64,000 bases of DNA from Epiperipatus broadwayi (taxonomy: Eukaryota > Animalia > Onychophora): contig JAQFVV010000006.1 in NCBI GenBank assembly GCA_028023455.1, positions 14,260,001 through 14,324,000 on the forward strand, read 5' to 3'. Below the pieces are notes generated by a model. It saw only the letters and a list, made by a program, of their open reading frames with translations, was not told the DNA's origin and did no database searches. Of this stretch, positions 736 to 61,692 are shown in pieces (the stretch's first letter is position 1; each line of letters begins with the position of its first letter). The position numbers and the translations under genes are program-made.

Positions 736-1290
736 CAGAGGGTAAACTCTCCATACAGTAGGCCACTCAGTGCAAGCCAGAGTAATTAATGGATGCAAGG
801 TTTGGTTTTCATCAGTGAAGAGCCTTGGATCTGAGAGCATGGCACCTAGATCTTGGAATCTAATGCAATCCTCCAGCAACCACCATTTAACTTATTATAA
901 TTATAAAGCTTTAAGTCCAAAATGAAAACGCAATAATATTTTCAATTAAAACTCATTAGCTTGTATAGTTTTTTTTTTGAAATTGTTTAGATCCAAACTC
1001 AATTCAGCATCCATACTTTTTGGTTCTTTAATAACCAAACTCACCATAATCCTATTGGGCAGGATTGGTATTAAACCACTAAACATCTCACTGATGAAAG
1101 CCACAAGCTAAAAACTAGTCTGGGGATATTAAATGAGTAGGCACTTGATAGGTATTTTATGCAGTAACCTTCTTGCATCCATTGATTACTCTGGTTTGCA
1201 CTGAGTGGTGCTATTGTATGGAGAGTTTAACCTCTGTGTAAACAGCTTGTGTAAGTATAAAAAATGGTGATCATGTGATTAGTGGTTTAA
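736..1290. mobile_element. Hammerhead-repeat family A, inverted pair (minus arm ~736-1085, plus arm 1086-1290)
   Basis: Homologous to copies at 21.9, 32.6, 33.8, 41.7 and 45.5 kb. The plus arm starts at the ribozyme stem I. Confidence 0.85.
1086..1125 (+). ncRNA. Type I hammerhead ribozyme, family A, core G12 mutated
   Basis: TCTCA CTGATGA AAGC CACAA GCTA AAAAC TA GTC TGGGG (GAAA changed to AAAA). Confidence 0.65.
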
Positions 1291-1544
1291 TATAGATAGG
1301 TGTATAGGAGATAGTTTATTTGTAGTTACACAACACAGATATGATAGGAATACAGGTAGACAGTTATATATGATTTTATAGATATAGAGAAGGCATATGA
1401 TAGAGTAAATAGAAATAGATTATGGGTAAGTTTAGTAAATTTGAGAATGAATGGAGCTTTAGTGGATCTTCTTTAAGAGATGGTATGAAAATAATTACTA
1501 TCCATATCAATTAGGAAATATAGAATCAGTTAAAATTAAAATGG

Positions 1545-2560
1545 GGTGGGATTAAGGTAAGGATGCCCTATGTTATCTATTTTGGTTTTTATTATATTAG
1601 AGAAATGGAGAGAGCAATAGAAAGACTGGGACGAGGAGTAGAGATACCATTAATAGATGGCAAAAAGGTATATACATTATCATGTCTTATTTGCTGATGA
1701 TATCTTGTGCACAGAAAGTAGGGAAGATTTAGAAGTTATGAATGAAGACGTTCACAAGGGTGGGTAAAGAGATGGGAATTAAATTTAGTGAAGAAAAATC
1801 AAAAGTAATACTGGGGAAAAAGAAGTCAAAGAATTTTTATTGAGGTTTATAAAGGTAAGTGTGGCGAATAGGTATAACTATTTGGGAATCATCTTAAATA
1901 ATCAGAAAAATTGCTTGAATGAAACAAAAAAAAGAAGAAAGGAACTGATAAAGAAATTAAGTGTTTTCATACAGTAAGTCTAATGTAGCTAGAATTGTAA
2001 GGGAATGGTAGCAGCAGTGTTAACATATGGTAATGATGTGTTATGTGTTAGTAAAGGATAAGATTACTTATAAAAAGTACAAAGAGAAGTGGGAAGACAT
2101 GCATTAGATGCGGTTGTGTGGACTGAAAAGGAGACAATTCAATGAGAAATGAGATGGTCAAGTTTTTATATGAAAGATGCAAAATGAAAATGTTTGTTAG
2201 ATTTGCAATTTATGGATAATAAGTGAATATCCAAAATAATTTTAAATTGGGTTATAAGTAAAGGACAGACAACAAGATCAGTGAGAAAGGTAGTATGGTA
2301 CTCAGAAGATTCGGATAAAGACTCTATCAGTATACTTATACAAAAGGTGGGATGATTGTGTTAGAATTGTTGAGTATTATAGTGGCAAAGAATGTAGAAG
2401 AATAGATGCATTAATAAAAAATAGGGAATCGGAGAGATGGAGAACTAGTATGGAGAGTAAAAAAAGTTTAAATATACATAAAAGTAAACAGAATATTGGG
2501 AGCAGAAAAATATTATATTTAATGTATTTAGAAAGTAAACATGAAAATAATATATATAGC
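1545..2560 (+). mobile_element. Degenerate non-LTR retrotransposon (RT 3' part), CATCA-tail LINE family
   Basis: LFADD-like RT motif near 1690. Colinear with the copy at 43225-44700. Many stops and frameshifts. Confidence 0.8.
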
Positions 2561-2879
2561 AATCAAACCTGTGCACAATGATTGAGATCTATACAAGTAT
2601 TCTGTTAGAAATTAAGGTGCTTATTTAGAAAGTGTTCTCCACCATTTTGGTTCAAAGGAACCCCAAACCACTGCTGACACAACCAAATGCTAAACAAAGT
2701 TAAATAATGCAGGTGCCTAACAGTACAACGTGTTCCAATTATTTTGACCACTAACTAAAAAAAAAAGCCATTTCTTTCAAAAATTAACACCTAAATTTTC
2801 TATAACTATGCTCAATCAAATATTTTTACAAATCAAAATATAAAACAGTAGTAGAGTAATTAAATTAGCGATATGAGCA

Positions 2880-3800: not shown

Positions 3801-5024
3801 TAATAATTTTTGGAATCTTTATAGCTTCTCATTCAAGTGTTTCATACGCTTTTTAATTTGTAAACTAATCTATAAACTAAATGATTTTATAAATCCATAT
3901 GAAATAAAAATCCAAAAAGGTATCTGTATAAAGTTTCATTTGTGTCAAAATCCGTATAAAGTAAAATCATGGAAATAAACATAAATGAAACTTTTCACCT
4001 GTATAGTTTTATGGCATAAGCGTTGTTCCATTTTCTTTGTCAATGGGCATATTTTTGTATTTTTATTTCTTGTGGATTTACTACCAATTACTTACTTATG
4101 GATTACATGATTCACTTTTTGTATTTTGCTTATTAAATTCTTTTCTTATATTCAATTCACAAATTGGGTTTTTAATTTAATTTCTTTTGCAGGTGCATTT
4201 GCCCTTGCCACTCATTTACGTGGCATTTTTTTGGGATTTTAATTTCTTATGAATTTACTATCAATTATTGTATTTATGGATTTCATGGTTAATTTTCTGT
4301 ATTCTTATGCTAGTTTAGATTCTATATTTGGATCCGTCCATACATTGGTTTGTAATTTAATCGCTAATTCAATTTCTTTCAGAATGCTTGTTGAATTTTT
4401 ACAAAATGTATGAAAATTTTTTAATATTATTTTTTTAATTGCCGAATTTATGTATTGTTGCTATGTAAGATGGTGGCTTCATTCTGCAGTAGAGCATAGA
4501 CTGTACAAAGGCGGTTATTTTCATAACCAATTTTTACGTTTGTTTCCTTTAGACGAAACCATTAGGTTAGAAAAAACACGTTTTAGACAGAAATGAGGTA
4601 TTTTTTTCGTCATTTTTCATCTTCTTTTTATTTATTCATTCTTTCTTATTATATCACTATTGAATGTGAGAACATTGTGTTCCACTTTGGGTCTACAGAA
4701 CCACAGATTAAGAACAACTGATATAAATGATGTTCTTGTTATGTTTTGTATGTATGATGGAATTAAGAACTTGTACTTATTTTGTTGTTGTTTACTTGTT
4801 AATAATTGCTAAAAAAATAAATCGCTACCAACATTTGACTCTGCTATTTATATATTATTATTTGGCTAGCGATATCAGAATCTTTTGAATTTTGTTTTCA
4901 TAATATTAAAAAAGAAATATTCTTATATATTTGAATAGGAAGTTTTTAAATAAACATGTCAACTTGAGCACTTGACAGAAGAGTTGCTCAGTCCACTCAA
5001 TGAAATATGGAAAGATGTATATTA

Positions 5025-5340
5025 GAAATAACAAATAGGATCGAAGACACATGGATGAGGAACCAAACATATTATTAACAGCATTAAAGAGACTGAAATA
5101 AAACTGGATTAGATATATTGCTAGAAGAGGTAGTAATAGTAGGATAGTTGAATATTTAAACTAGACCCCAAGAGATTGTAAAAAAAAACCCCGAGAGACT
5201 ACATGTGAAGTGGATAGATGAAGTAAGAAAGTTTTTTGGTTTGACATGGAGAAGAGAGGCTAGAGATCGAACAATTGGATTAAGCTTGGAGAGACCTTCA
5301 TCCTGCTCTGGATTAATAATGGTTGAAATGATGTTGATTT
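5025..5340 (+). mobile_element. RTE LINE 3' fragment
   Basis: Matches the 3' end of the 7251-10386 element (gagaccttcatcctgc...tggattaataatggttga tail). Confidence 0.8.
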
Positions 5341-6481
5341 TCTGATGAAAATCAATCCTCTGAAATATTAAACAATTATGTGAACAAATAATTGTATTTT
5401 GTTTTTTATTTATATATTTCTTTTAATTAGTTTATATATTTTTTATGGTTTCTATAGATATATAACTCGATTTACATAAAAACCATTTGTTAAGACTGCA
5501 TACTATCTAAATCTTTTAGCTTTGTCTTAATTGAACCAACTATTGTCCCAAGTAGGATAGAAAAATAGTCATCTCATTGTAACGCAAACATTCACTAGCA
5601 CTTGATACAATTAAAAAAAAAAAAAAACTGCTAAAATTTTATATAAAAAGGAACAAATTGAGTAAAAAATAAGTCGACAACTGTTAAATTTAGTTTAATG
5701 ATAAGTCAAATAATTTCTTTTATATATAAACTTACAAACATTCGATATTTGTGTATAAACATACATCACAAAAGTCTATAAAAGTGATGAAAAAAAAGTT
5801 GGTTACTCACCAATTACTGATTTGAAATGTCATTAGCTTATCTTCAGATCATAAAAAAAAATTCCTTAAACATATTAATATTCTAATCGAATTTTTAATA
5901 AAACAAATCCATGGCATTTCATATTCCACATTTCTATTTCAGTTCAATCTATATTTACTGATGTTTATAACAGTTGATAAATGAGTATTTTGATATCCTT
6001 AGATGAAGGATAAAGCAAGAATGTAAAATCGTTCAAACTTTTACTGTTGATAACTTGCAAGCCTGATGATTACTGCCTTTCGCTGTAAAGGTCTGCTGGG
6101 AAAACCTCTGTCTTGTATTGGGCTGCTTATTGAAAAGATTGCTGTAACTATAGCGACTGTAATAATCATTTAAATCCCAGATAGTTAGTCACATATGTAC
6201 ATAAAATATCAAAAGTTTACCACAAGCTAAAATTAAAAAAAAATGCTATCAGTGAAAATTTTAAATTTTGATTTAATTGCCAATTGGTGACCTAGTATAT
6301 ATATAGCCTGGAGCATTATTACACTTATTATTTAACTGAAACACAGGCTTAATATATATCATGTGTCTATATATGTAATATAGGGTATATGAGCACAGAC
6401 TTTCACATGACCCACCACTCTCCACTCTATCTAATAACACTGATACACTCAAGCACATATATGCTGATAAGATAAATAATC

Positions 6482-6525
6482 ACCAATATACGTATTTCAT
6501 GCTAAACCAGCAATCATCAGCTGGT
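6482..6525 (-). ncRNA. Type I hammerhead ribozyme, family C
   Basis: Reverse complement: ACCAG CTGATGA TTGCTG GTT TAGCAT GAAAT ACGT ATA TTGGT. Confidence 0.8.
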
Positions 6526-6913
6526 CCGGATTATCATCTCCCACACATATATACTATAAGTGAAAGTCTGTGCTCATATACCCTATATTACATATATAGA
6601 CACATGGTATATATTAAGCCTGTGTTTCAGTTATTACATTGTAGAGATGTCTGCCCATCCTTGCATCTGTATTTAATGGATTATGTCCTGTACATGTGGG
6701 GTTCAGATTGACCCTGGGTCAACATGGGTGTGACAAGAATCTCGGCCTCAGGGTGGCCTTCGAGCATTCCATCATTGGATTTTCAATTGGATGGACGGTT
6801 GAAGAGTTGGAGTGTGGAGTAGATTGGAGCCAGTCCATTAAAGTATGAAGATTGTCTATCTTAATATATATCTGAGCACTTATAGTATATATGTGTGGGA
6901 GATGATAATCTGG

Positions 6914-6957
6914 ACCAACTGATGATTGCTGGTTTAGCATGAAATACGTATATTGGT
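6914..6957 (+). ncRNA. Type I hammerhead ribozyme, family C
   Basis: ACCAA CTGATGA TTGCTG GTT TAGCAT GAAAT ACGT ATA^TTGGT. Palindromic stem III ATACGTAT. Stem I is extended by GATAATC/GATTATT. Confidence 0.85.
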
Positions 6958-7250
6958 GATTATTTATCTTATCAGCATATATGTGCTTGAGTGTATCAGT
7001 GTTATTAGATAGAGTGGAGAGTGGTGGTCATGTGAAAGTCTGTGCTCATATACCCTATATTACTTATTATTTAAGTAATACTGTGGGTGCAATTTGAGAA
7101 TTATATTTGCATTTTATAATGTTATAATTGACTATTTATTAGTCTGCATTCAAAACAGGTTATATTTCTTGTTTAAGGAGGTATTTAAACTTCTTTCAAT
7201 CAATAATTTCAATCTCTGGTCAAGTTGCATCTTTAATGTCTATATAAATA

Positions 7251-10200
7251 TCATCATCATTATCAACCATTATCAATCCACTACAGGATGAAGGTCTCTC
7301 CAAGTTTAATCCATCTTCTCCGATCTTTAGCTTCTCTTCTCCACATCACCCCTACACATTTTCTTATTTCATCCATCCATCTTACACGTGGTCTCCTTCT
7401 GGGTCTTTTACAATCTCTTGGAATCCAGTTTAAAATTTCAATTGTCCATCTATTATCATCTCTTCTAGCAATATGTCCAGCCCAACTCCACTTCAATCTT
7501 TTAATTTTTTCAATGAGGTCAGTAACACCTGTTTGTTCTCTTACCCATACATTGCGTTCGGAAGATCTCTTCTTGTTACTCCCAACATACATCTCTCCAT
7601 ACTTCTTTGAGTGGTCTGAAGTCTCTGTATTGATCTTCTATTAAGTGTCCAAGTCTCAGATCCATAAGTAAGAACTGGTAAAACACATTTGTTAAAAACC
7701 TTTCTTTTCAAACACATAGGCATATTTCCTTTTAATATCAAGTTATTTCTACCAAAAGCACTCCAACCAAGTTTAATTCTATGATTAATTTCCTCTATTA
7801 TGTTTCCATCTGTATTAATAATCTGACCAAGGTATTTGTAACTCTTAACTTCTTCTAATTCATCATAATCAATCTTTATTTTCATATTTGGAGCAAATCG
7901 ATTAAACATTACTTTAGTCTTTTTAACATTTATCTTTAGTCCTACTTTCATCTGATAACTCCTGCAACATTTCCTGCAGCTCGGAAGCATTATTTGCAAA
8001 AACAACTACATCATCTGCGAAATCTAAATGACTTAAATAATCTCCATTTACTTTCACTCCTTTAGTTTCCCATTTTAATCCACAAAATACTTCTTGCAGC
8101 ACTGCTGTAAAAAGTTTTGGAGATATGGAGTCACCTTGTCTTACACCTTTCTCAATGTTGACTTTCCCAGTATCATTATGTAATCTAATTGTTGCTGTTG
8201 CATTTTTATAAATATTCTTTAAAATATGACAATATCCTGGATCTATACCTTGATGATCCAATGCTTTAATCACTGAAGAAATGTTTATAGAATCAAATGC
8301 CTTTTCATAATCTACAAATCCAAAACATAATGACAACTCATATTCATTTGTCCTTTCTATAACTTCTCTCAATACTTGAATATGATCTACTGTACTAAAA
8401 CCACTTTTAAATCCAGCTTGTTCTCTTGGTTGGTGAAAATCCAAGGTTCTCTGTAGACGAGTTGTAATTATCTTGGTAAAAATTTTATATAAAACTGATA
8501 AAAGGCTGATAGGTCTGTAATTTCTAATATCTTCTTTATCACCTTTTTTAAATATTAATATTATTACTGCATTCTTCCAATCATCCGGTACATCTTTATC
8601 ATTTAGACATTTGGTATATAACTTTGCTAATATTTTTTCTGTTTCTTCACCTGCTTCTTTTAATATATCAATTATAATTCCATCATTACCTGGAGCCTTT
8701 CCTTTTTTCATACATTTAATTGCATTTCTCACTTCTTCATTTAAAATTCTGGGCAATTCGGAAGATGTAATAGATATAGGAGGTACTTGTTCTTTATTAC
8801 TATATAATTCTTGATAAAAATCTTCTACCAATTTCATAATGTCATCCCTCTTTTTAGTAATAATTCCATCTTTTTCCTTATTGCAGATATAAATTTCCTA
8901 CCAATACCAAAATGTTGTTTTACATTCTTAAGACTTTTATTTTCTTCTACAGCTTTTCTTGCTAGTTCACAGTTATACTTTCTTATATCATTTTCAACTC
9001 TTTTCCGCACCATTTTACAAAATTCAAGATATTCAATTCTTTTTAATGCATCATTCTTGCATATCTTCATATTCCTTCTTTTCTTCATAAGTTCTCTAGT
9101 CTCAGTAGAAATTTTATTAGTCAATTGCTGCTTTTTTCTACCAGCTATCTTTGTTGCAGTTTTTAAAAGTGTATCAGTTATTTTCATATTAATTTCATTC
9201 AAATCTGAATCATGTTCAAAATCTACTAATACTTGAAACCGATTTGTAAGTTCTAATTTAAATTCATTAGAATGTTTCTGAAGATTAGGAATATCAACTG
9301 TAAATATAGTTTTTCTTAATAATTTTTGTCTCTCTAGTTTTACATTAACATGTATCTCATCCCTTACTAATCGATGATCACTTCCTGTGTTAAATTTATT
9401 AAGAACATTACAACCTTGAAATATGTATTTCCTGTTAGTCAAAATATAATCCAATTCTGCTGTACCTTCATTTGGATGCTTCCATGTCCATTTCCTTCTA
9501 ACATTTTTCTCAAAAAAAGAATTCATAATATAAAGTTTTTCCTTCTCTGCAAACTCCACAAGTCTATGTCCTCTCTCATTTCTATTACCATAACCAAAAT
9601 TACCTACAACACTTTCATCTTTCATTTGTTTACCAATTCTAGCATTAAAATCTCCCATAACAATTTTAAAATGTTGTTTACTCTGATCAAAAGCCTTTTG
9701 TACATCCATATAAAAATCTTCTACTACTTCATCACTGTGAGAACTTGTTGGGGCATAAACCTGAATTATCTGCATTTGATATCTGCTATTAAGTTGTATA
9801 ACTAATCTTGCCACTCTGTCTGATACACCATCAATCTCCACAATATTGTTCTTCCACTTTTTATTTATAATGAATCCTACTCCACTTGTATTTCCAATAT
9901 TTGTGCCTTTATAATAGAGCATATGTCCACTTTTTAAATCAATTGTCTCTTCACCTTTTCTTCTAACTTCACAAAGTCCAATAATATCCCATTTAATATA
10001 AGAGAGTTCTTCTTCTAATTCTTGCAATCTTCCTTCACTTGAAAGTGATCTGCAGTTGTAAGTACCTAAATAAAAAGTCGTCATCAAATGGCAGCCTGGG
10101 TCCGCCTCCAGGATATTCTTAGCACCCTCCGCCTTCGGCCACCAACCGCTGCCTTGGTTGGTGACTTTACAGCCTCCTGGGATTAAGGGCCATGCTTTAT

Positions 10201-10386
10201 TTTTGTCTGTCATAATTGTATAATTGGGAAAAATCTTTATCATTTACACAAACATTCATTCTGCCTTATCAGGCACTGAGAAGAAAGACCATGGTGTTTC
10301 TTGATCTTAAACTCAGAGGTAAAAAGCCAATAAACTCACCACGCTGGCTAATGCGTGTTGGTGAGCAGCCCATCCATGTTCGTATA
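7251..10386 (-). mobile_element. Near full-length RTE-clade LINE (APE endonuclease plus RT), frameshifted
   Basis: TYNCRSL, VYAPTS, GDFNA and SDHR APE motifs in 8834-10243. YRPISLLS and FADD RT motifs in 7923-8837. WSWAGHIARR C-terminus. (TGA)n tail at ~7251. Candidate 11-bp TSD CTATATRAATA at 7240-7250 and 10387-10397. Confidence 0.95.
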
Positions 10387-43212: not shown

Positions 43213-43224
43213 TTACTATTTAAT

Positions 43225-50480: not shown

Positions 50481-50992
50481 TTTGAACTCAGACTTTCACA
50501 TGACCCTCAACTATTCCACCCTATCACACACATGTCAAAAAAATAAATAATCACCAATAAACATATTTTGTGCTAAACCAGCAATCATCAGTTGGTCCAG
50601 ATTATCATCTCCACACACTATATACAGTCAATGCTCAGCTTATATTAAGATAGCCAATCTTCATACTTTAATGGACAGGCTTCAATCCACTCCACCCCAC
50701 AACTCTTCAGCCATCCATTTCATTGAAAATCTGATGATGGAAGATTCAAAACTCACATTGGTGCCAACCATCTCATCCTACCCATGTTGACCATAAGTCA
50801 TTCTGACCCCTCATGTACAGGACATAATCCTTTTACATACATATACGAGGGATGGGCAGACATTACAGCACTATATTTTAATATATGAATTTTTTTTTGG
50901 TGATTATTTATCTTTTTGATATGAGTGTGATCAAGTGTGTCAGCAGCATGAGATAGTGTGGATAGTTGAGGGTCATGTGAAAATCTGAGTTC
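50481..50992 (-). mobile_element. Family C copy with 5' inversion inside a PPM1D intron
   Basis: Minus arm 50481-~50870 with a mutated ribozyme at 50554-50596. Plus arm ~50890-50992. Confidence 0.85.
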
Positions 50993-51299
50993 TAATATTT
51001 TACATATAGTGTAAATTAAGACATTTACACAAATATGTGTATGAACATCTTTTTCAAGTAAATTGGCTGAGTAAATTAGTCATAATTATAAAGTCATCCG
51101 AAAAAAGTTGGCTTAACTATTAAAAAATAATTGTTCTCATTATGTCAATAATGATACAATCATATGGAAACAATATTTAATTTTAAAAAGTGAATTAAAG
51201 AAGAAAGATGACGAAACAAATTATTGAAGAAATGGGTTTTTAAGGACAAATTGTTCATAATTATTTGTAACTGTTAAAGTACAAATTTGGAAAATAGTT

Positions 51300-51912
51300 G
51301 TCGAATAATCATTCCCTTTCAGTTTCCAGTGCTACAGGAATGAGTTTGGTAAGAGTGACTTGCAATAAATTTCATAGGTCGAAAAGAATTTTCATTATTT
51401 TGTTGAAATTATTGAAAAAATTCAATCAAATAATCATTCCATTTCAGTTTCCAGTACAAGAGTAAGTGAATTCAGTAAAGGTGACTTACGATAAATTTCA
51501 TAAATCGAAAAATAATATTCCTTAAATATTAATGTCTCATCTGTTTATTTTTATTATTTTGTTGAAATTATTAAAGAAATTCAATTAAATAATCATTTCT
51601 TTTCAGTTTCTAATTATAAATTTATTAAACGCACATTGATTACGTAAGTAATATTTACTGAGGCTATAACCTCGATAATATGCGTGTAAAATGCGATAGT
51701 AGGGACCTCTACAGGTGTTTTAACCACAAGCTTACACTATGGAAGAAAAGAGGGGAACCCCTTCTTATTTCAACCTACTTTCTAGTACATCAGTACATTA
51801 ATTTGGTAATGGTGACTTGCAATAAATTTAATAAATCGAAAAAGAATCAACCTTAAATATTAATATCAGATCTATTTACTTTCATTATTTTGTTGAAATT
51901 ATTGAAGAAATT
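51300..51912. repeat. Imperfect 125-165 bp tandem repeat interrupted by an insertion at ~51611-51795
   Basis: Recurring aataatcatt...tttcagtttc and ttattttgttgaaattatt blocks. The insert resembles 29815-29920. Confidence 0.7.
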
Positions 51913-52042
51913 CATTATTAAGATGTTAAAAGGATTATTTAAAGTTCGATTCATATCACTATGATGGTCAAATATCCAATATAATTTATTTGTCCATAAT
52001 GTTGTCACAAACACATAAATAAATAATAAATAATAAAAAAAA

Positions 52043-52616
52043 AAAATCAGATATATTAATCTTTAACTGAGATTTAAAGTTTATATCTGTGCTAGAGATA
52101 ATCTCTAGTTTCGAAAATGATTAGTAATAATCATTAGTGTATTTATCTGAAATGGATGGTGTCAAAGCTGTGAGTGGAGGAAGTTTGACAATGGTAAATG
52201 AAAATGTAGCAATTTACTCTAGATAAATACTTTGCATATAATAAAGATATATATGAGAGTGACCTGGGCCAACTGATGAGTGCTGGTTCAGCACGAAATG
52301 CATCTTGGGGATCATTTGTCTTTTATTATGTCTTTATTTGTATGATTTTAAAAAAAGAATTGGGAAGTATGGAGGTATTTATTATATCTATAAAGATATT
52401 ACATACGGGACAGAGAAAGGTGAATAACTCGTGTGTGTAAAATTTAAAAATCAGATATATTAATCTTTAACTGAGATTTAAAGTTTATATCTGTGCTAGA
52501 GATAATCTCTAATTTCGAAAATGATTAGTAATAATCATTAGTGTATTTATCTGAAATGGGTGGTGTCAAAGCTGTGAGTGGAGGAAGTTTGACAATGGTA
52601 AATGAAAATGTAGCAA
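52043..52616 (+). mobile_element. Hammerhead-repeat family D: 404-nt monomer with 170-bp direct repeats
   Basis: 52043-52212 and 52447-52616 differ at 2 positions that I could see. The ribozyme lies between them. Confidence 0.88.
52269..52308 (+). ncRNA. Type I hammerhead ribozyme, fully canonical core (family D)
   Basis: CCAA CTGATGA GTGCTG GTT CAGCAC GAAAT GC ATC^TTGG. Predicted cleavage after 52304. Palindrome ATGCAT. Confidence 0.92.
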
Positions 52617-53149
52617 ACAACTATTAATAAGTATAATTAAATGTTTATCAAACCGGCTTTCATCTCCATTGAGACGGTTTGATAAACATTTAATTATACT
52701 TATTAATAGTTGTTTATTTCAATCTTGTTTGATTGATTATTTATTTTCGATTCATATTTACAGAATAATAATTTACACAATTTCTTTCGCAGCTCATACA
52801 TATGTTTGTAAATCATGAAAATAACGTGGCAAGATCGTACAACAGTTGATATGTTCTGTGATGATCCTCTATTATAAAGGCATTTATTCATTAAATTGGC
52901 CATATGAGATGAGTAAATGTTAACATGCTTCCGAAGAAAAGTATTTTAAGGTGAACTGGGACATATTTTAAAGGGAGAGACAGACTGTTTATATTATAAA
53001 GATTATCTTAAAAATATTTAATATCTATTAGAAAGACCTGATTGAGATTAGAATACAATGAAGAGTTGTGATTAAGACAGAAAGCAAAGTTTTTCCCAGA
53101 AACAACAGCTTCATAAGGTATCCAGTGACAAACATGTGACATACATGGA

Positions 53150-53592
53150 TGTATTTTTGGTCTTACCAAAAAATTTTTTACTTATTGATCTGAGATTTGG
53201 ACACTTACAAGAGTAATCCAGAGACTTCAGACCACTCAAAGAAGTACGGAGAGATGCATGAAGGAGTAACAAGAAGAAATCAAAAATGAAATACATGAGA
53301 AAGAGAACAAACAGGTGTTACTGACATCATTGAAAGAATTAAGAAACTGAAATGGAATTAGGATGGACATATTGTTAGAAGAAGTGATAATAGATGGATA
53401 GTTGAAATCTTAAACTGGATTCCAAGAGATTGTAAAAGACCCAGAAAGAGACCACATGTGAGATGAATGGATGAAATAAGAAAGTGTGCAGGGATGGTGT
53501 GGAGAAGAGAAGCTAAAGATCAGAGAAGATGGATTGAACTTGGAGAGACCTTCATCCTGCAGTGGATTGATAATGGTTGGAAGTGATGATGA
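53150..53592 (+). mobile_element. RTE LINE 3' fragment
   Basis: Homologous to 7251-7700, with a gtgatgatgat tail. Confidence 0.88.
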
Positions 53593-54132
53593 TTTTTGTT
53601 TTACAGAGTTGGTTTAATTAGAAAACTCCTTTTTAATAGTTTATTCTTTGTCTTTCTGTCTATTTTCATTAGAAAGCTATACTCACAAGTGGCTGCTAAT
53701 GAATTATATATATATAGGATGCCCCAAAAGTTTCATACATAGGGAAAATGGGAAATTGTAGAAAAATGTACCTTTTATTTACAGAATATTCATTACAAAA
53801 TTTTGTGTAATATTCTGTATGTGCTGGCCACATCGTTATACACACACATGAAGTCTTTTCTCCTACTCATGACGAACACATTCCAAAAATATCTTTTATT
53901 ATGCAAGTAATTGTATATTTCAAATGCATTTCTTTAAATGATCCAGGTTTCTAATTTTTTCATAGTTATTATTTCCTAAATATGGGGATTTTGGGACACT
54001 ATTCATTGAAAAAGCCACCCATTTTTTTTTAATGATTTTTTACATTTTGGATCTATAGAGAATTTTTTGGCGTAATATAGGTAATTATCTTATTCATTTT
54101 TTTCACTTTACAAATGAAGATCTGATTAGAGC

Positions 54133-54337
54133 GGATTTGAACACAGACTTTCAAACTCCCTTTAGTCATCTACTCATCCCACACACACACACATATATAT
54201 ATAAACTAATGAATGCTGGTTCAGCATGAAATATGTATATTGGAGATCATTTATCTTTTTCACATGTATGTGGCCACATGTATCGGTTATATAAGATGGA
54301 GTGGAAGGAAGCTTGGAAGTCTGTGTTCAAATCCCCT
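54133..54337. mobile_element. Family C short inverted pair
   Basis: Minus arm ~54133-54200 and plus arm ~54204-54337 with a decayed ribozyme. Confidence 0.75.
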
Positions 54338-54504
54338 CTAATTACATCTAAAGAGTATATACGCTATACTTGTATTCAAATATTAAATAAAGATCTGATA
54401 ATAGATGCATTTATAAATAATTTGATTTATGAAATACTTTAAATACTGTACTTGTTATAATTATTATATGTAATATTTAAATACTAATCTTAATGCAATT
54501 AGAA

Positions 54505-55290
54505 AGGATTTGAACTCAGATTTTCAAGCTTCCTGCAACTATCCATTTCCATCCTATACAATTGATACGCATGACCACATATATGTGAAAAAGATAAATG
54601 ATCTCCAATATACATATTTCATGCTGAACGAGTGCTCATCAATTGGTCCAGATCATCACGTTCCACATAGATAGATATATAATTAGTGCCCAGTTTATAT
54701 TAAGGCAGAAAATCTTCAAACTTTAATGGACAGGCTTTTTAATCTTCCCCACCCTCCAACACTTCAACCATCCATATCATTGAAAATCTGCTGATGGAAT
54801 GCTCAAAGCCCTTGTTGATGTCAATATTATTGTCATACCCCTGTTGACTTTAAGTCGTTCTGGATTTAAATGGACCTATTAAGGTTCTATAGATGAAGGG
54901 TCAGAGTGACTTTAAAGACAACATGGATACGACAATAATATTGGCAGAGTGACTTAAAGTCATTATGGGTATGACAATAATATTGACAGCAGTAAGGGCT
55001 TTGAGCTTTCCATCATCAGATTTTCAATAATATGGATGGCTGAAGAGTTGGAAGGTAGAGAAGACTGAAGCCTGTCCATTAAGGTTTGAAGATTTGCTAT
55101 CTTAATATAAACTAAACACTGATTATATTATATGTGTGGGAGATGATAATCTGGACCAACTGATGAGTGCTAGTTCAGCATGAAATACTTAGATTAGAGA
55201 TCATTTATCTTTTTCACATGTATTTGGTCATGTGTATCAGTTGTATAGGATGGAGTAGAATCTGCAAGGAGCTTACAAGTCTGAGTTCAA
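54505..55290. mobile_element. Family C long inverted pair
   Basis: Minus arm ~54505-54860 and plus arm ~54905-55290. Ribozyme remnants at ~54604-54648(-) and 55156-55197(+). Confidence 0.85.
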
Positions 55291-55467
55291 AGCTCTTTTA
55301 ATTAAATTATTATATGTGTTTATTTAACTATATATCTTCTTATTAATTATAATAAATAAAAAAAATCGTATATAACAGCTATATAAATATATTAAAAATA
55401 GTTATACATAAAAAGCTTTTTTTCATCACAATTTTGTGCCCTTTTCAAATGTTAATCTATTTATCAT

Positions 55468-55880
55468 TATGTGATGTGATGCACTGTGATTTCTCCTTAT
55501 ACAGAGTCAGCAATCTCTCAGCAACTATGCTCACAAAAGCCTGTTAGGCACTTTAACTTCCCTTTCCATTCCCTGTCCTGAGTGGGAAAATCTTCTCTAT
55601 CCTGTTCCATCCCATTTCCATAACATAACCTTTGTCAACTCCATAGCCTTTATATCTAAAGCCCCCTTATCTTTTCCCAAACCTAGCATAAAAACCAGTA
55701 AGCCACTTTCTGTATAATCATATTTATTCTTCCACAACTTCATTATTTGTATTTTTTCTGCTTTCAGATATTTACATTAAATTAAAAGGTGCCTAATATT
55801 TTCTATGCCTTCCTTACACAACTTGCAGACTAAATCACCCACATTTTTCCATTTATATATATATTCCTTTGATACTAAAT
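55468..55880 (-). mobile_element. CATCA-tail LINE 3' fragment
   Basis: atgtgatgtgatgcactgtg tail. Homologous to 44300-44700. Confidence 0.85.
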
Positions 55881-56317: not shown

Positions 56318-56533
56318 GTTCGGACCATTTTACTGCTTTGCCCTTAACAAAGGACCATAAACCCGAATGTCCCACAGAAAGGAAGAGAATTGAAAAACTA
56401 GGCGGTAGTGTTATTAGCAAATCTGGTGTCCAAAGGGTAGTTTGGAATAGACCCAAATTAGGGCATAAAGGACCTGTGCGTCGAAGTACAAGAATTGATC
56501 AAATTCCATTTTTAGCGGTTGCGAGATCATTAG
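56318..56533 (+). CDS. PPM1D: PPM1D coding exon (B-loop region)
   Basis: ttttaag|GT TCG GAC...TTA G|gtacaa. Encodes [72 protein letters not shown], including the PPM1D-specific basic loop. Phase 1/1, compatible with both neighbours. Confidence 0.96.
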
Positions 56534-56777
56534 GTACAAAAAGTCTTTGCAAATATTCAAATTATTACTTGTTCAATGAAATGTGTTTGTGGTTTGTTTT
56601 AGATGTCTTTTCTTTTCACCCTAATAATTCTCTATCAAAATAACTTAAATTTTTATTTTCTAAAATGCAAAAATATTTTCTTTACAAGATTTTTTTTAAT
56701 AGGCTCTATATACCCACACACGCATGATATATATTATAAAAATTTATCTATTATTATAAAGTGCTGAAAAATTTGAA

Positions 56778-56932: not shown

Positions 56933-57230
56933 ATCAAAACTTATGGGACTTTTTACCTTAAAATAGTATTTTAAATTTAATGTATATTTATTGTCTATAG
57001 TCTCAATCAAACATTATTTATAAGGGGATTATATTTGTTTATCATGAATTCACTTATAACACAAAGGATAAGGACTCCGGACGTAATTAATTGTGGCATT
57101 AATGATGTAATTTTTATTTTTATAAATGAAAGCAATAAAAAACTATATACTTAGAATATAATTTAAAAATAGAGTCAAAATACAGTTTAATTAAATTGTT
57201 TTTTTCCTTCTTCTTTTTTTCATATGTCAA

Positions 57231-57302
57231 AGCGTTGACTGGGAAGCGAACCCAGGCCAGCTGCTTGAAAGGCAGCTATGCTAACCGCTAGGCCACCAAT
57301 GC
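57231..57302 (-). pseudogene. tRNA-Gly(TCC)-derived pseudogene with TTC anticodon
   Basis: Reverse complement: GCATTGG TG GCCT AGCGGTTA GCAT A GCTGC CTTTCAA GCAGC TGGC CTGGG TTCGCTT CCCAG TCAACGC T. The body matches tRNA-Gly(TCC); the acceptor stem, T loop and discriminator base deviate. Confidence 0.8.
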
Positions 57303-57414
57303 TTGACAGCCAGTTTAAATTGTTATATCACAATTTTAAAATATTTTTATGTAAATAAAATCTATTTATTCATGATTTTAATATCGATTTAATGTGCGAC
57401 TGTAATTGTTTTAG

Positions 57415-57641: not shown

Positions 57642-58019
57642 GTAAGAGAAGAGAAATATTTAAGCCTAGATTTTAAATTATTAATATTATAGTTTATAAT
57701 ACAAAATAAAATGCTAAGTATTAAAATAGAATATATTATGGTCAAATATTACATGTATTATAAATATCATGCATTGTATTTTGGCATTTCCTTTGTTTTG
57801 ATTTATGTAATATAGATTATTCATATTACATGCGATCATATAAGTAATAAATAAATAATTCTGTCTATAATATAAATTATATACACACATACATCTATGT
57901 ATCATGCAGAGAAGAAAAATTCGATAATAGTAGTAATATTTAGGCGAGCCTGCTTTCATTACTGTATATTAGTATACGGTATGTGCAGTAGAGGGAGAAA
58001 TAGTAGTTATAACGGAAAA

Positions 58020-58392
58020 ATATGGGTGATTTATTTTGTAAATTATGTAAGGAAGGAATAGAAAATATTAGGCATTTGTTAATTGAATGTAAATGTTTGA
58101 AAACAGAAAGGGTACATATAATGAAGTTGTGGAAAAATAAATATGAAAAGAGTGATTATACAGAAAGTGAATTATTGATTTTTATGCTGGGTTTGGGAAA
58201 AGATAAGGGGATTTAGATATAAAGGTTAAAGACTTGACAAAAATTATGTTGTGGAAATGGGATAGAACAGATTATGGGTAAATTTAGAGTGGGGAATGTA
58301 AAATAAAGTGGCTAACAGGTTTATCTGGGCATAATTGCTGAGATATTCTTGACTTCGTTTAAGGAGAAGCCATAATACATCACATCACATGT
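58020..58392 (+). mobile_element. CATCA-tail LINE 3' fragment
   Basis: CKLCKEGIENIRHLLIECK and a catcacatcacat tail. Confidence 0.88.
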
Positions 58393-59599
58393 GATTATGT
58401 AAAAAGTTATGTCTTGAAAATGTCATAATATTGAACGAAAAACTGGTTAGAATAAAATAATTATTTAATAATAGTTGTTTATTTCAATTGAGTTGAATTG
58501 ATTATTAATAGTAATTATGGAAATAACATTATGAACAATTTGAATATTGTTAAGGAAATATACCTTTAAAAATAATAATCGTATAATTACTCGTTTAGGA
58601 TCTCATTTAACATGTGAACGCTAATTTTATATTGAGTGTAATAATTTCATTGATTTCAAATTTTTTTTTTTGCGTTACCCCACAGGAAATTGATGCAGAA
58701 ATCCTTATTTGAGAGTCTTCTATTCTATCATTGTGCTAACTATACAGAGTGGGAAATAAATGTATGTTTAATCGAGGGATGAATGAAGTTGTGATGTTCA
58801 AGCACCCAAACGGTGGTCAAATGCAACATTTCTATCCAGTTGACACTGGCTGAGATTTTTATTCTTTCACTTCATTCAGATGAAAATTGATCTCAAAACT
58901 TTATCTCTTAAATCTGTCAGTCTTCCATGTATACGAGATGTAACTTTTATATCGTTGATATAATTGAGTATTTTCTGCATCTCTTTTTGTGGGTGGGCTT
59001 ATTTCACGTTATAATAGTCAGTAGGTATATTTCGAAAAGTATTTTCTAATAAATTAGCTAATGCACCAGAGGTTTATTTGTAACCAATTAAATCTTTTAC
59101 ATGTCCGGTACCCTCCACATAAGCACGTTCATAAATCATGAACTAATGTCCAGTATAAAAATTTCTCAGACTATTCTCATTCATGATATGCATGAGATAC
59201 ATGTAGAGTGAAAATGGTTTGTCTGGAAATTTTTTTTTATGGAACGATAGCTCAAGATTTAATTAGTATGGTGTGTAAGTAAACCCAAAAGATTTGATTG
59301 GCTATAGATCTCAGGTGCAATAATATATATTTATTACAATATGATATTTCTGTTTCACTGATCATTATAAGTGTCCTAACCATTGTCAGATTTGAATGGT
59401 GATGCATTGATAGATTAAACACTATGATAGTCCCAGGATTGTGGGCATGCAAATGGATTCGTTTCTTCATATGATCACCAAATATATAAGTATCTAGAAA
59501 ATAATCAGCATTATGATTTATTGCATGTTTACACATACACACACACACCCCACACACACATATATATATATAATAAAAATATTTAATTATTTAGCATAT

Positions 59600-60600
59600 G
59601 TATTTAGACAGCTTAACTAATAACAAGTTATTACCAAAAAACCTGTAGAGGTTCCAACCAGAAGTTAGAATTACTAATGGCTTTATTAAATCCTTCAGTT
59701 CCACCACTGTAGTCCAAATCTGACAGTCATTAATGACGTGAGTCATAGTTTGTATTTGTCCATATTTTCAAAGATCAATGGCTGATAAGTTCCATTGATG
59801 AAGCAGATCGGCACAATGGCTTTGAGTTGTTCTGAATCTATTGATAAGGCCCCATTTGCGCCTAGAAAGATCACATCCAGTTGACTTTATTGTCGAATCT
59901 GGAACAAGAAATTTATTTGGAAACTTATAAGAATTCCATTTTTTTTAATGTCATAATTCTTTGATTGTAGAGTTTTGACTGAACATCCAAATTGGAGATC
60001 TTGATTTGAATCAAGTCTTAAGTAATGAAACTATATATGAAATTATTGATATGTCAGATCTGCTTATTATTTCTTTATACATTTTCTACAAGATAATTTT
60101 TCCTCTGATATCTGGTGGGGAAACATGTGCAAGAATAGGAAGCCACTGTTCCAGTAATATTTCTCATGGTAATTTTTAACTGGGTTAGTGTGATCAGCTT
60201 TTCTCCGAACTGGAGACCAATATTTACCAGTGGAATGCTAAAGAAGTTGTCCATAAAGTACTTTGGATCACAACCCCAAATAGTACAACCAGCTTTCCAA
60301 GGTTATTTCTAGAAAATAATTTTGATCTAATCTTAAATAAATGAGGAAAACAAGTTAGGTTATGATCCAAAGTTATTCCAAAATAGCACAGTGTAAGGTC
60401 TTATTTTAGACTGCTATTGCAAAAACTTATAATCAAATTGTGAGATGATTCCCTGTCATTTAGATGAAAAATTGCATATGCTGTCTTTATTGCATTAGGA
60501 ATAAAATGCCAGTCTTTGAAAAATATTTTGTCATATTCTTGTTAATTCGTAATTAGTTTTTTCCATTATTAACCAAAAGTAGAAATTCTCATTTAGCCGC
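59600..60600 (-). mobile_element. Degenerate Ingi/Vingi-like LINE 3' region
   Basis: Minus strand PNKFLVPDSTIKSTGCDLSRRKW resembles the PT..PPGFDLPR..W C-terminal motif of that group. Confidence 0.5.
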
Positions 60601-60996
60601 TTCAAAGATATATTGATATATTTTATTCTGCAGTATCCGTAATCAGATTAATTGTTATTGTTTGTAAATTATAATATGAAATTTTATTTTTAACAGAAAA
60701 GTTTAAAATATAGTTCATATAGCAAAAATAAAGCCATAAACTGAATAAAACTTAATGTTTATTAAACAACTTATAAATTTAAAAAAATACAATAGTTTAA
60801 TCATTAAAGAAATAACAACTTTACAAAATACTGTGCATTCCTTTGAAAAGGGTGACTGGCAACTGGTTCAGTCCTCAAGCTTCCTGCAGCACAGTCTGAA
60901 TCAGCACATGTTACGTAGCAACATAGTTTAATTATTCACGACAAAAATTTCCAATTGTTAACATATATAAATCATAAGTGACATTAAATGTTATAT

Positions 60997-61692
60997 AAAT
61001 GCAATTTATCCACTCTATTTTGAACACCTTTTAGCAAAAAAACCTTTTATTGTATATATATGCATACACAATCTTAAGTTTCGACTATCCTGCAATCTTC
61101 TTCAGAGCTATGTTATAATGAACAAAATAAAATAAAATACACAACTATATAAATAATACCATAAAAAAATGTAAACAATAAAATTAACGAAATAATAAAA
61201 ACATAAAATATAACAAAACATAATAAAACTGAAATAAATAAAATCAAACCCAAATAAAATAATCCAGTTAATATAAAATAAAATATACATTATAAATATA
61301 AATTATACATGTGTATTCCTGACTGCATATATACACATATTCATGAAGAATTATTAATGTATAATTTATATTTACTTTATATTTATATTGTATATTTTAT
61401 TTTATAGTAACTGGATTATTTTATTTGGATTTGATTTTATTTGTTTCAGTTATATTATGTTTTGTTATATTTTATATTGTTTTTTAGGTTTTTTTAAATT
61501 AGTTTTTTATTAATTTTACTGTTTATATTTTTTATGGTATTATTTATATAGTTATGTATTTTATTTTGTTCATTACATCATAGCTCTGAAGAAGACTGCA
61601 GAACAGTCGAAATATAAGATTGTGTATGCGTATATGTACAATAAAAGGTTTTCGCTAATAAATGTTTAAAATAGAATGGATAAATTGTATTT
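60997..61692. mobile_element. Family E: AT-rich inverted pair, each arm with a CTGAAGA-type hammerhead remnant
   Basis: 61582-61620(+): AGCT CTGAAGA A GACTG CAGAA CAGTC GAAATATAAGAT. Mirror copy at 61070-61109(-). Confidence 0.75.

Follow-up and report, generated by a model that had tools for sequence, protein, structure and literature searches.

Introduction

Minimal hammerheads of Penelope-like elements (PLEs) occur in pseudo-LTRs, as dispersed single motifs and as pairs 100–700 bp apart on opposite strands (Cervera & de la Peña 2014, PMC4209133). Among the features of PLE insertions are 5' truncation, partial tandem copies, an inverted and likewise 5'-truncated neighbouring copy, and a 30–40 bp tail that in many cases is confined to a single end (Craig et al. 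2021, PMC8557442). With the purified protein of an Anolis PLE both strands were cut and extended, hammerhead cleavage was not required, and initiation took place at two adjacent internal sites, ~85–92 nt downstream of the hammerhead cut as calculated from the positions in the paper (Frangieh et al. 2024, PMC11167929). [quoted passage not shown] The SINE-like schistosome elements Sm-alpha/Sj-alpha and newt satellite 2 carry hammerheads with a weak helix III and are processed from multimers. Plant LTR retrozymes, thought to spread via self-cleaved RNA, have type-III hammerheads in true LTRs, a primer-binding site, a polypurine tract, 4-bp duplications and Gypsy-type mobilisation (Cervera et al. 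2016, PMC4918200).

The window, i.e. the whole 64,000-nt stretch of the AT-rich Epiperipatus broadwayi genome that was analysed, holds old, non-coding repeat units of 0.37–0.47 kb, each with a minimal hammerhead motif. A preliminary description of the same DNA had placed such dispersed families, built around a type-I hammerhead with a palindromic helix III, in the class of Penelope pseudo-LTRs and metazoan non-LTR retrozymes, and this placement is upheld (PMC4209133, PMC7229834, bioRxiv 10.64898/2026.07.22.740005): since the architecture of the copies agrees with the published PLE insertion signature, the repeats are best read as non-autonomous Penelope-type elements.

Results and Discussion

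Hammerhead motifs: CTGANGA-N6–30-GAAA occurred 32 times in the window, vs 3.65 ± 1.89 (maximum 8) in dinucleotide shuffles. The full type-I descriptor (helix I ≥ 4 bp, CUGANGA, helix II ≥ 3 bp, GAAA, a helix III palindrome with A15.1–U16.1 as its closing pair, H17) was satisfied at four sites (CUGANGA box starts 6520−, 6919+, 22111− and 52273+) and in 0/300 order-1 Markov simulations. Family-model scans gave 30 hammerhead sites, 20 of them in superfamily A/E and the other 10 in superfamily B/D; exact CUGANGA...GAAA boxes were retained in 14 of the 30, and the earlier count of about 25 intact or decayed motifs was about right. Intact motifs number only 4 of ~30.

Each unit carries one minimal type-I hammerhead on the sense strand, its helix III a loop-less palindrome of 6–8 nt, which fits the "minimal" Penelope-type hammerhead. 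Because helix III is palindromic and loop-less, activity is predicted only for two paired copies, be it in trans or within a multimeric transcript, and would probably need protein help. Helix II of A/E is non-canonical (A·A at 10.1/11.1 plus 2–3 bp) and lacks the G10.1–C11.1 pair, which elsewhere even the minimal PLE hammerheads have conserved (PMC4209133).

The Rfam search of the whole window, a check the preliminary description had proposed, returned zero hammerhead calls at the gathering score or at E ≤ 10. The best copy (52034–52616) reached 16.4 bits with Hammerhead_1 (RF00163) in end-to-end alignment, vs a gathering score of 34; for the B1 and A3 copies nothing was reported, even in very small searches.

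Pairing, covariation and conservation: of the helix cells in the A/E alignment, 90% were paired, vs 28–41% with the partners slid; for B/D the values were 87% vs 28–47%. The A/E covariation score was 0.243 vs 0.166 shuffled (0/500 shuffles reached 0.243); helix III covaried (ACUAGU, ACCGGU, ACAUGU), as did the outer pair of helix I (U–A/A–U). No excess of covariation over shuffles was found for B/D. Conservation of unit A peaks at the hammerhead block, with identity 0.83–0.87 vs 0.64–0.80 across the remaining unit.

Repeat families: the unit of A is ~438 nt, that of B 472 nt and that of D 404 nt; E shows repeat offsets of 323 and 376 nt. E is a sister family of A, and D carries a hammerhead module common to B. 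All periods measured earlier were reproduced as direct self-BLAST offsets: 438, 452 and 457 for A; 323 (46781→47104) and 376 (19817→20193) for the family formerly called B, here E; 472, formerly family C, which is the terminal direct repeat of the B1 copy (6560–6595→7032–7067); and 404 for D (52034→52438, 97% identity). ORFs of at least 75 aa inside the elements had no Pfam match, in agreement with the claim that no protein is encoded. Tandem A units abut directly with no ORF between them; the copies are therefore not merely the terminal fragments of a coding element. The loci are collected in Table 1. Family F has a core-like box only; its helices I and III cannot form, and it is not a verified hammerhead. 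A 421-nt tandem (38652–40596) was rejected as a hammerhead family, being the 3' UTR of a LINE.

Table 1. Repeat loci of the window (A, B, D and E with hammerhead motifs, F with a core-like box); positions are those of the window.
Feature	Span	Strand or arms	Hammerhead sites	Remarks
Family A, locus 1, head-to-head pair	725–1293	minus 725–1090; plus 1086–1293	minus arm without 3' half (deleted); 1070–1144 in plus arm	nhmmer family model; arm overlap 91% identical
Family B (B1), youngest locus	6330–7067	minus 6372–6563 (tail to ~6330); plus 6560–7067	6482–6525(−), 6914–6957(+), descriptor-positive, U·U at 10.1/11.1 in both	arms 98% identical; plus arm: 36-nt terminal repeat 6560–6595, then full 472-nt unit 6596–7067
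Family B, short head-to-head pair	14152–14389	both strands	truncated	5'-truncated copies
Family E, head-to-head pair	19545–20242	minus 19545–19831; plus 19873–20242	19613–19683(−), 20062–20131(+)	arms 90% identical; terminal direct repeat at 376-nt offset
Family A	21916–23077	minus 21916–22509 (A3m, 1.35 units, 438-nt repeat); plus 22531–23077 (1.2 units)	22076–22117(−), intact A-type; predicted cut between 22082 and 22081	
Family B, single 5'-truncated copy	27282–27660	+	27506–27553; canonical G10.1–C11.1, 6-bp helix II, one mismatch in helix III palindrome	MFE contains helices I and II; z = −2.6
Family A, single copy, ~1 unit	32637–33061	+	32885–32966, decayed	
Family A, head-to-head pair, 5'-truncated copies	33815–34347	minus 33815–34120; plus 34125–34347		arms 93% identical; minus arm tailed, plus arm without tail
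Family A, head-to-head multimers (A6)	41683–43225	minus 41683–42399 (A6m, 1.6 units, 457-nt period); plus 42359–43225 (A6p, 2 units, 439/452-nt period)	two per arm, delimiting a whole monomer; boxes partly mutated	self-BLAST, hammerhead scan; arms decayed, about 71–78% identity
Family A, copy	45567–46175	+	45842–45924	start = natural unit start (model position 124); unit folds at z = −4.0
Family E (E8m)	46739–47297	minus 46739–47242; short plus 47234–47297	47096–47173 and 46782–46837, 323 nt apart; latter without helix II	
Family A, single copy	47604–48006	−	47676–47755, decayed; helix III palindrome ACAUGU	
Family B, head-to-head pair	50461–51007	minus 50461–50874; plus 50893–51007		
Family D	52034–52616	+	52269–52308, best in window: CCAA / CUGAUGA / 6-bp helix II / GAAA / AUGCAU / C; predicted cut after 52304	one 404-nt unit + 179-nt repeat of unit start, 97% identical; cut off by hairpin element starting at 52617
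Family B, two head-to-head pairs	54122–55358	54122–54204(−)/54204–54347(+); 54449–54864(−)/54945–55358(+)		second pair: arms 81–83% identical, tails on both
Family F, head-to-head pair	60828–61875	both strands	core-like box CUGAAGA, bulged A, 5-bp helix II, GAAA at 61586(+) and 61105(−)	arms 83% identical; fragment 26146–26316(+)

Copy architecture: the 3' ends of the copies are fixed ~115–120 nt downstream of the hammerhead cut site, with an optional tail of ~45–50 nt, and the hammerhead invariably lies on the strand bearing the fixed 3' end. In family A the 3' ends fall at model positions 86–124 (seven copies) and 162–175 (three copies), with one outlier at 290, and the 5' starts are spread over positions 1–404. 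Family B ends at 457–471 of 472, tailed and untailed ends both being present, and starts at 2, 41, 92, 107, 109, 281, 319, 321 and 358. An extension of ~50 nt was found on one arm only in pairs A1, A3 and A5. Of the earlier view that the copies are circular permutations of the monomer with terminal repeats, or dimers, the repeats and the longer-than-unit copies stand; arbitrary permutation does not, the 3' ends being fixed and the 5' ends truncated.

Twelve pairs are head-to-head (3' ends outward) and none is tail-to-tail (binomial p ~2 × 10−4, our own arithmetic), an arrangement absent from the preliminary description. The arms of one pair are usually mutual closest relatives (98, 93, 91, 90, 83 and 76% identity). 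No target-site duplication was demonstrable around the pairs, a point against the Penelope-type reading.

At 12 loci the copies form long inverted repeats, constant at their outer ends and variable in the middle, as would also be expected of foldback or MITE-like DNA transposons that bear long terminal inverted repeats and in which the hammerhead-like boxes are incidental, and other hairpin elements are present in the window (e.g., 52617–52713 and 36050–36189). This origin is nevertheless highly improbable: single-arm copies have the same fixed 3' end (27282–27660, 32637–33061, 45567–46175, 47604–48006), whole-unit tandems occur within arms, the arms of one pair are truncated differently (e.g., model positions 151 vs 404; 297 vs 104), no short fixed-length duplication flanks the pairs, and the hammerhead pairs, covaries and is the best conserved block.

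A decayed satellite or segmental duplications, i.e. an old tandem array broken by insertions and rearrangements whose units never transposed, can scarcely be credited either. The A copies are indeed clustered (19.5–23, 32.6–34.3 and 41.7–48 kb), and a LINE-2 insertion separates an A copy that breaks off at 43225 (model position 120) from one that takes up again at 45567 (model position 124), as if an array had been interrupted; against this stand the strict orientation of the 12 pairs, arm identities of 76–98%, which indicate events of very different ages, the same architecture in unrelated families (A/E, B/D, F) and the recurrence of identical 3' ends beside unrelated flanks.

Source of the reverse transcriptase: the only reverse transcriptases in the window belong to two LINEs, one RTE-like (7246–10243), the other a LINE-2 (1294–2504 and 43226–44696). 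The 5'-truncated LINE-2 copies adjoin 3' ends of A(+) at 1293|1294 and 43225|43226, at different LINE positions; these two contacts are left without explanation by the Penelope-type model and count against it. They and the presence of two RT-bearing families would suit SINE-like passengers, whose hammerhead RNAs are copied by a LINE of the window or a relative, the inverted pairs arising by L1-type twin priming. Such an origin is improbable, since A, B and E share no 3' tail, poly(A) or microsatellite with either LINE (shuffles give the same alignment scores). Moreover, twin priming puts the outer end of the inverted segment at an internal RNA position, whereas here the outer end of either arm generally coincides or nearly coincides with the canonical 3' terminus, tailed or untailed (E2m ends early), and an optional tail has been described as unique to PLEs (PMC11167929).

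The Penelope-type machinery proposed in the preliminary description gains structural support from the fixed 3' ends, tail, 5' truncation, partial tandems and 12:0 head-to-head twins, but none from coding content: the window ORFs of at least 75 aa include neither a Penelope RT nor a GIY-YIG ORF. The link to Penelope is supported by the agreement of copy structure with the PLE signature (PMC8557442) and with two-strand internal initiation (PMC11167929). As parts of the best explanation we infer the identity of the enzyme (PLE RT/GIY-YIG), ribozyme activity and any circular RNA stage.

Template: the hammerhead cut site is never the start or end of a copy, and every copy that reaches one continues across it. 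The template was therefore uncut, multimeric or recircularised RNA and not a ribozyme-processed linear monomer. Arms with two hammerhead sites that bound a whole monomer are A6m and A6p only, at one locus. Even an active ribozyme could free no monomer from the majority of copies.

Classical retrozyme propagation, in which a tandem transcript is cut by its hammerheads into monomers that are circularised by tRNA ligase and copied by an RT rolling round the circle into longer-than-unit copies, is a variant of the main explanation that differs in the form of the template, not a true alternative. It is possible, though rather doubtful. Some copies exceed one unit (2 in A6p, 1.35 in A3m), and every hammerhead site reached is read through, as a circle predicts; an uncut multimeric transcript, the dominant substrate of the one PLE tested in vitro (PMC11167929), yields the same features. 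Circular RNAs of 170–400 nt are documented for such elements in corals, mussels and axolotl (PMC7229834), and here the folds of the better preserved units are more stable than those of shuffled sequences (z = −4.0, −3.6, −3.0, −2.5); the other units fold weakly (z −0.35 to −1.1), the boxes of A6m/A6p are partly mutated and the second motif of E8m has no helix II.

For the Penelope-type reading the following course may be proposed. A multi-unit locus would be transcribed, and an RT/GIY-YIG protein supplied by a PLE at another place in the genome would bind the RNA near the hammerhead and cleave both strands of an AT-rich target. Reverse transcription would begin at one of two neighbouring internal sites, ~115–120 or ~165–175 nt downstream of the hammerhead cut, and the cDNA would extend toward the 5' end of the RNA, passing the hammerhead site in its uncut or religated state and stopping after a variable length that may exceed one unit. 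Where both DNA ends act as primers, two copies would result, joined in the middle by their truncated 5' ends and with their 3' ends facing outward.

Comparison with known systems: the repeats share with minimal PLE hammerheads the type-I topology, a helix I of 4–6 bp, a palindromic helix III that has no loop and so points to action as a dimer, numerous diverged copies that group into families, and opposite-strand pairs a few hundred bp apart; with PLE copies they share 5' truncation, partial tandems, the inverted twin, an optional, often one-ended tail and a 3' boundary ~100 nt downstream of the hammerhead. They differ in having no RT/GIY-YIG ORF between or beside the repeats, whole non-coding units being directly contiguous, in the tail (~45–50 vs 30–40 nt), in the 3' boundary (~115–120 nt from the cut vs ~85–92 nt in the Anolis PLE) and, for A/E, in helix II.

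With metazoan non-LTR retrozymes they have in common non-coding units of a few hundred bp, one type-I hammerhead, low GC, species-specific sequence and the lack of LTR, primer-binding site and polypurine tract. Here, however, arrays comprise at most 2 units, most loci have one hammerhead, inverted twins predominate, and the units (A ~438 nt, B 472 nt) lie at the top of the published 150–450 bp range or beyond it. Several copies are located in a host-gene intron, unlike the exclusion from introns seen in a vertebrate retrozyme survey. Sm-alpha/Sj-alpha and newt satellite 2 are alike by description, as short non-coding repeats with a type-I hammerhead, but theirs are canonical and modelled by RF00163, with which the copies here score 16.4 bits at best (gathering score 34); no tRNA-like promoter part was found by eye in the present repeats. 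Plant LTR retrozymes are likewise non-autonomous and hammerhead-bearing, while their type-III hammerheads, true LTRs, primer-binding site, polypurine tract, 4-bp duplications and Gypsy-type mobilisation have no counterpart here.

Conclusion

No relatives were retrieved from other genomes, and the families of this window are apparently undescribed members of an element class that was already known: the hammerhead repeats are probably non-autonomous Penelope-type elements, i.e. metazoan "non-LTR retrozymes" or pseudo-LTR-like PLE derivatives.

Hammerhead motifs

The loose box CTGANGA-N6-30-GAAA was found 32 times in the window (3.65 expected). The full type-I descriptor asked for helices I and II of at least 4 and 3 bp respectively, the core, a palindromic helix III with A15.1-U16.1 as its closing pair, and H17; it gave four sites, against none in 300 order-1 Markov simulations; profile scans with the family hammerhead alignments gave 20 sites of A/E type and 10 of B/D type, A/E and B/D being the two superfamilies of non-coding hammerhead repeats. 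The exact CUGANGA...GAAA string was present at 14 of these 30 sites, the remainder being mutated; only four of the approximately 30 motifs are intact, with the complete core (C3 U4 G5 A6 N7 G8 A9, G12 A13 A14, A15.1-U16.1, H17) and three helices. The hammerhead repeats reported in the preliminary description were thus borne out, and its periods reappeared as direct self-BLAST offsets of 438, 452 and 457 (family A), 323 and 376 (E), 472 (B) and 404 nt (D); what it called A, B, C and D are here named A, E, B and D, in that order.

Helices I, II and III pair, with the open end in helix I, in both alignments. In A/E, 90% of the helix cells pair (28–41% with the partners slid) and the covariation score lies above every one of 500 shuffles, compensatory changes being seen both in helix III and at the outer helix I pair; in B/D, 87% of the cells pair (28–47% slid) and the covariation is not above the shuffles. 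Within unit A, conservation is highest in the hammerhead block. In B/D, helix I continues past a GGA bulge into an outer segment, GAUCU/AGAUC. Helix III is a palindrome (ACUAGU, ACCGGU and ACAUGU in A/E; AUACGUAU in B; AUGCAU in D) that can be formed only between two copies. Judged by its sequence, this loop-less palindromic helix corresponds to the minimal Penelope-type design (min-HHR), the active site of which exists only as a dimer (PMC4209133; review PMC6765202). Single-motif MFE folds mostly lacked the hammerhead fold, and dimer cofolds were likewise uninformative.

The conserved G10.1-C11.1 pair of the min-HHR (PMC4209133) is kept in the best B/D copies and absent from A/E: G-C occurs in D and in the single plus-strand copy B3 only, G-U in both arms of B7 and the plus arm of B6, and U.U in both arms of B1 and the minus arm of B4. 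Helix II has 6 bp without a bulge in B/D. The A/E motif has the full core, a 6-bp helix I and the palindromic helix III, yet A.A at 10.1/11.1 (A consensus, followed by only 3 bp of helix II; N.A in E) and a helix II of 2–3 bp; it could be a working hammerhead variant, assisted by protein and overlooked by current descriptors and Rfam.

The best copy (52267–52310) was aligned with RF00163 end to end at 16.4 bits (E = 0.22 in a 201-nt search; gathering threshold 34 bits), and no Rfam hammerhead match was obtained on 6450–7000 (B1) or 22040–22160 (locus A3) searched alone, because helix III is a loop-less palindrome of 6–8 nt. The Rfam search of the whole window, proposed in the preliminary description, returned no hammerhead at gathering score or at E ≤ 10. 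Hammerhead-centred patterns gave no match in metagenome and viral sequence; motif strings retrieved nothing relevant from the literature.

A possible fifth family, F, consists of a head-to-head pair, built like A and B, and a fragment. Its box comprises CUGAAGA, a bulged A, a 5-bp helix II, GAAA and a G10.1-C11.1 pair; in no register was a helix I or a helix III closed by A15.1-U16.1 found, position 16.1 being A, not U. Family F was therefore left out of the hammerhead count; it may be a hammerhead element that has lost its function, or else have no relation to the others.

Ends and units of the copies

The family A model has 438 nt, with its origin about 3 nt downstream of the hammerhead cut site. 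The 3' ends of A lie at model positions 86–124 (seven copies, six of them within 103–124) and 162–175 (three), with an outlier at 290; the 5' starts range from position 1 to 404. For family B, the 472-nt unit was delimited with the terminal repeat found in B1, the youngest copy; 3' ends lie at 457–471, and 5' starts at 2, 41, 92, 107, 109, 281, 319, 321 and 358. Fixed 5' ends for B were considered and rejected as an artefact of the reference copy, since the starts vary on the 472-nt unit. From the clustered 3' ends and scattered 5' starts it follows that the units are linear, with a 3' boundary fixed about 115–120 nt downstream of the cut site. The 5' truncation is variable and a 3' extension (tail) of about 45–50 nt is optional: it is carried by one arm only in three of four A pairs, and both tailed and untailed 3' ends occur in B.

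In copies longer than one unit, the non-coding units directly abut one another: 2.0 and 1.6 units in the plus and minus arms of locus A6, 1.35 and 1.2 in the minus and plus arms of A3, 1.44 in D; the minus arm of E8 shows a repeat offset of 323 nt and the plus arm of B1 consists of one unit with a 36-nt terminal repeat. Tandems are short, not exceeding two units (both A6 arms, the minus arms of A3 and E8, D), and most loci hold a single hammerhead. The hammerhead-containing portion of the unit links A with E and B with D. Unit identity within a locus is 71–97% and tracks the arm identity.

The cut site is never the start or the end of a copy; every copy that reaches one reads through it. The template was consequently not a cleaved linear monomer, but either a multimeric transcript left uncut or a circle closed again by ligation. 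Folding z-scores of the units (−0.35 to −4.0) are only suggestive of a circular or linear monomer RNA stage.

Inverted pairs

Twelve inverted pairs were found in the window, in every case ordered minus arm, then plus arm from left to right, so that the 3' ends point outward and the truncated 5' ends meet centrally; tail-to-tail pairs numbered none, against 12 head-to-head. Arm identity is 98% (B1), 93% (A5), 91% (A1), 90% (E2), 83% (B7 and F) and 76% (A6). The paired arms are usually mutual nearest relatives, and hence each pair arose from one event, the events being spread over a long time. Around all 12 pairs, the search for target-site duplications gave only 6–7 nt matches, the chance level in the AT-rich flanks.

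A foldback or MITE reading conflicts with four observations: the same 3' end is found in single-arm copies, arms contain tandems of whole units, the two arms of a pair are truncated unequally, and the hammerhead is constrained at the RNA level. Derivation from a broken-up satellite explains neither the strict orientation rule nor the wide spread of pair ages.

LINEs, and junctions of LINE-2 with family A

The RTE-like LINE has open APE and RT reading frames; its closest database relative (Centruroides, scorpion) is only 57% identical. The repeats at 4988–5341, 16963–17198, 33323–33421 and 53175–53597 are probably 5'-truncated 3'-end fragments of it. Exact-protein look-ups of the LINE ORFs gave no match.

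The 5'-truncated LINE-2 copies start directly at canonical 3' ends of A(+), at 1293|1294 and 43225|43226; their truncation points differ, lying before RT motif A at the first locus and just before the GLRQGCP motif at the second. Past the second copy, family A is taken up again at 45567, with the model position that follows. The RT fragment at 43297–43566 beside A was tried as the coding part of the element and rejected: it is a FADD-type LINE reverse transcriptase, with its own 3' end and different 5' truncation points at the two loci. Likewise rejected as a further hammerhead family was the repeat of about 421 nt, which is the LINE-2 3' UTR; it has no hammerhead, is locally tandem (TRF: 2.0 copies, 86% matches), and all its copies have one fixed end in common.

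That a LINE mobilised the hammerhead elements is unlikely: no 3' tail is common to these elements and either LINE, and the two arms generally both reach the canonical 3' terminus or stop close to it, an outcome that twin priming of the L1 type would not give. The LINE-2/A junctions could reflect coincidence, mutual target preference, break capture or template switching. Were there coupling, LINE cDNA could have been captured at double-strand breaks made by a Penelope-type endonuclease, or the template could have been switched between LINE and A RNAs. The combined proposition, that the A/E motif could be a functional hammerhead variant and that the junctions could reflect mechanistic coupling, is regarded as improbable.

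Host gene and other features

The window is animal DNA with a GC content of 30%; this low value, together with the matches of the host gene, suggests an invertebrate. Two PP2C ORFs, the right-hand one 73–79% identical to PPM1D of hemichordates, molluscs, arthropods and others, are predicted exons of a PPM1D/Wip1-like PP2C phosphatase gene. The intron between them holds the loci B4, D, B6 and B7 and a LINE tail. As D lies within this PPM1D-like intron, its hammerhead, the most intact one, would be intronic and in sense orientation; in a vertebrate survey retrozymes are reported to be excluded from introns (bioRxiv 10.64898/2026.07.22.740005). For a 490-aa ORF no homologues were found. Sub-threshold Rfam "miRNA" matches were rejected as inverted repeats; the "MIR395" match (34057–34148) is the centre of the A5 pair.

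Features of the window (window coordinates; A, B, D and E loci are hammerhead-repeat copies named by family)
Feature	Position	Strand	Remark
Hammerhead, descriptor-positive	6482–6525	−	box start 6520
Hammerhead, descriptor-positive	6914–6957	+	box start 6919; predicted cut after 6952
Hammerhead, descriptor-positive	22076–22117	−	A-type; box start 22111; predicted cut between 22082 and 22081
Hammerhead, descriptor-positive	52269–52308	+	family D; box start 52273; predicted cut after 52304; most intact
Locus A1	725–1293		
Locus A3	21916–23077		
Locus A5	33815–34347		
Locus A6	41683–43225		
Locus E2	19545–20242		
Locus E8	46739–47297		
Locus B1	6330–7067		
Locus B3, single plus copy	27282–27660		
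Locus B4	50461–51007		
Locus D	52034–52616		
Loci B6, B7	within 54122–55358		
Family F	60828–61875		head-to-head pair
Family F	26146–26316		fragment
RTE-like LINE	7246–10243	−	open APE (469 aa) and RT (304 aa) ORFs
LINE-2	1294–2504; 43226–44696		FADD-type RT
Repeat of ~421 nt	38652–40596; 44280–44696; 55468–55879; 58011–58392		LINE-2 3' UTR/tail
PP2C ORF	50032–50286	+	profile positions 95–130; predicted exon
PP2C ORF	56338–56643	+	profile positions 135–182; predicted exon
PPM1D/Wip1-like gene	62327–63799	+	possibly a further exon
tRNA-Glu(UUC)-like	57230–57303	−	Rfam 37.4 bits; also called by ARAGORN
Near-perfect long hairpin, MITE-like	52617–52713		Rfam: sub-threshold microRNA precursor; cuts off element D
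Near-perfect long hairpins, MITE-like	36050–36189; 528–661; 32588–32669; 45537–45593		Rfam: sub-threshold microRNA precursors
Other tandem/dispersed repeat	23896–25178		period ~110/463 nt; no hammerhead box
Other tandem/dispersed repeat	51263–51941		period ~125–490 nt; no hammerhead box

Relation to Penelope elements and retrozymes

Insertions of Penelope-like elements (PLEs) are highly 5'-truncated and often form partial tandems; at their 5' end there is often a further copy, inverted and itself 5'-truncated, and a tail of 30–40 bp is often confined to one end (Craig et al., PMC8557442). Each of these published features is reproduced by the elements of the window, which show 5' truncation with a fixed 3' boundary, partial tandems (pseudo-LTR), an inverted twin and an optional tail, of about 45–50 nt as against 30–40 bp; only the ORF is missing. 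Among the ORFs of at least 75 aa in the window there was no PLE gene with a telomerase-like RT and GIY-YIG. Minimal hammerheads sit in pseudo-LTRs, mostly as dispersed single motifs, and pairs on opposite strands 100–700 bp apart also occur (Cervera and de la Pena, PMC4209133); the elements of the window match this pattern too. Metazoan non-LTR retrozymes are head-to-tail repeats of 150–450 bp with a type-I hammerhead in each (PMC7229834); in the window such tandems do occur, none with more than two units.

The class is already known: Penelope hammerheads were described in 2014 (PMC4209133) and metazoan retrozymes in 2020 (PMC7229834); in vertebrates, the retrozymes were traced back to Penelope pseudo-LTRs in a preprint of 2026 (bioRxiv 10.64898/2026.07.22.740005). 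On the features read from the sequence, the elements of the window fit the non-autonomous derivatives of Penelope that are today regarded as one and the same as the non-LTR retrozymes of animals (PMC7229834; bioRxiv 10.64898/2026.07.22.740005). Of the earlier retrozyme interpretation, the class and the Penelope link were retained (hammerhead type, insertion signature), with processing into circles as a conjecture; a cleaved linear template is contradicted, the cut sites being read through.

With the purified protein of an Anolis PLE, Frangieh et al. (PMC11167929) showed cleavage and extension of both DNA strands; reverse transcription starts at two adjacent internal RNA sites, 111–118 nt into the ORF, the hammerhead cut being 26 nt in, and hammerhead cleavage is not required, the ribozyme being protein-assisted (PMC11167929). 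For the present elements, a PLE RT/GIY-YIG protein supplied in trans would recognise the hammerhead-proximal RNA and nick both strands of an AT-rich target; cDNA would be primed either about 120 nt 3' of the hammerhead or, at a second site, about 170 nt 3' of it, and two cDNAs would then be joined head to head.

Rfam overlooks elements of this kind, and in genome annotation an inverted pair can pass for a hairpin or microRNA precursor. The template was uncut, or religated, at the ribozyme, in agreement with the dispensability of cleavage for insertion in vitro. The main new result is the copy architecture, i.e., the full Penelope insertion signature (fixed 3' boundary about 115–120 nt past the ribozyme, one-sided tail, 5' truncation, head-to-head twins) on small non-coding hammerhead units; the window is a compact, internally controlled example in which the retrozyme class is tied to the Penelope machinery structurally, not by co-occurrence.
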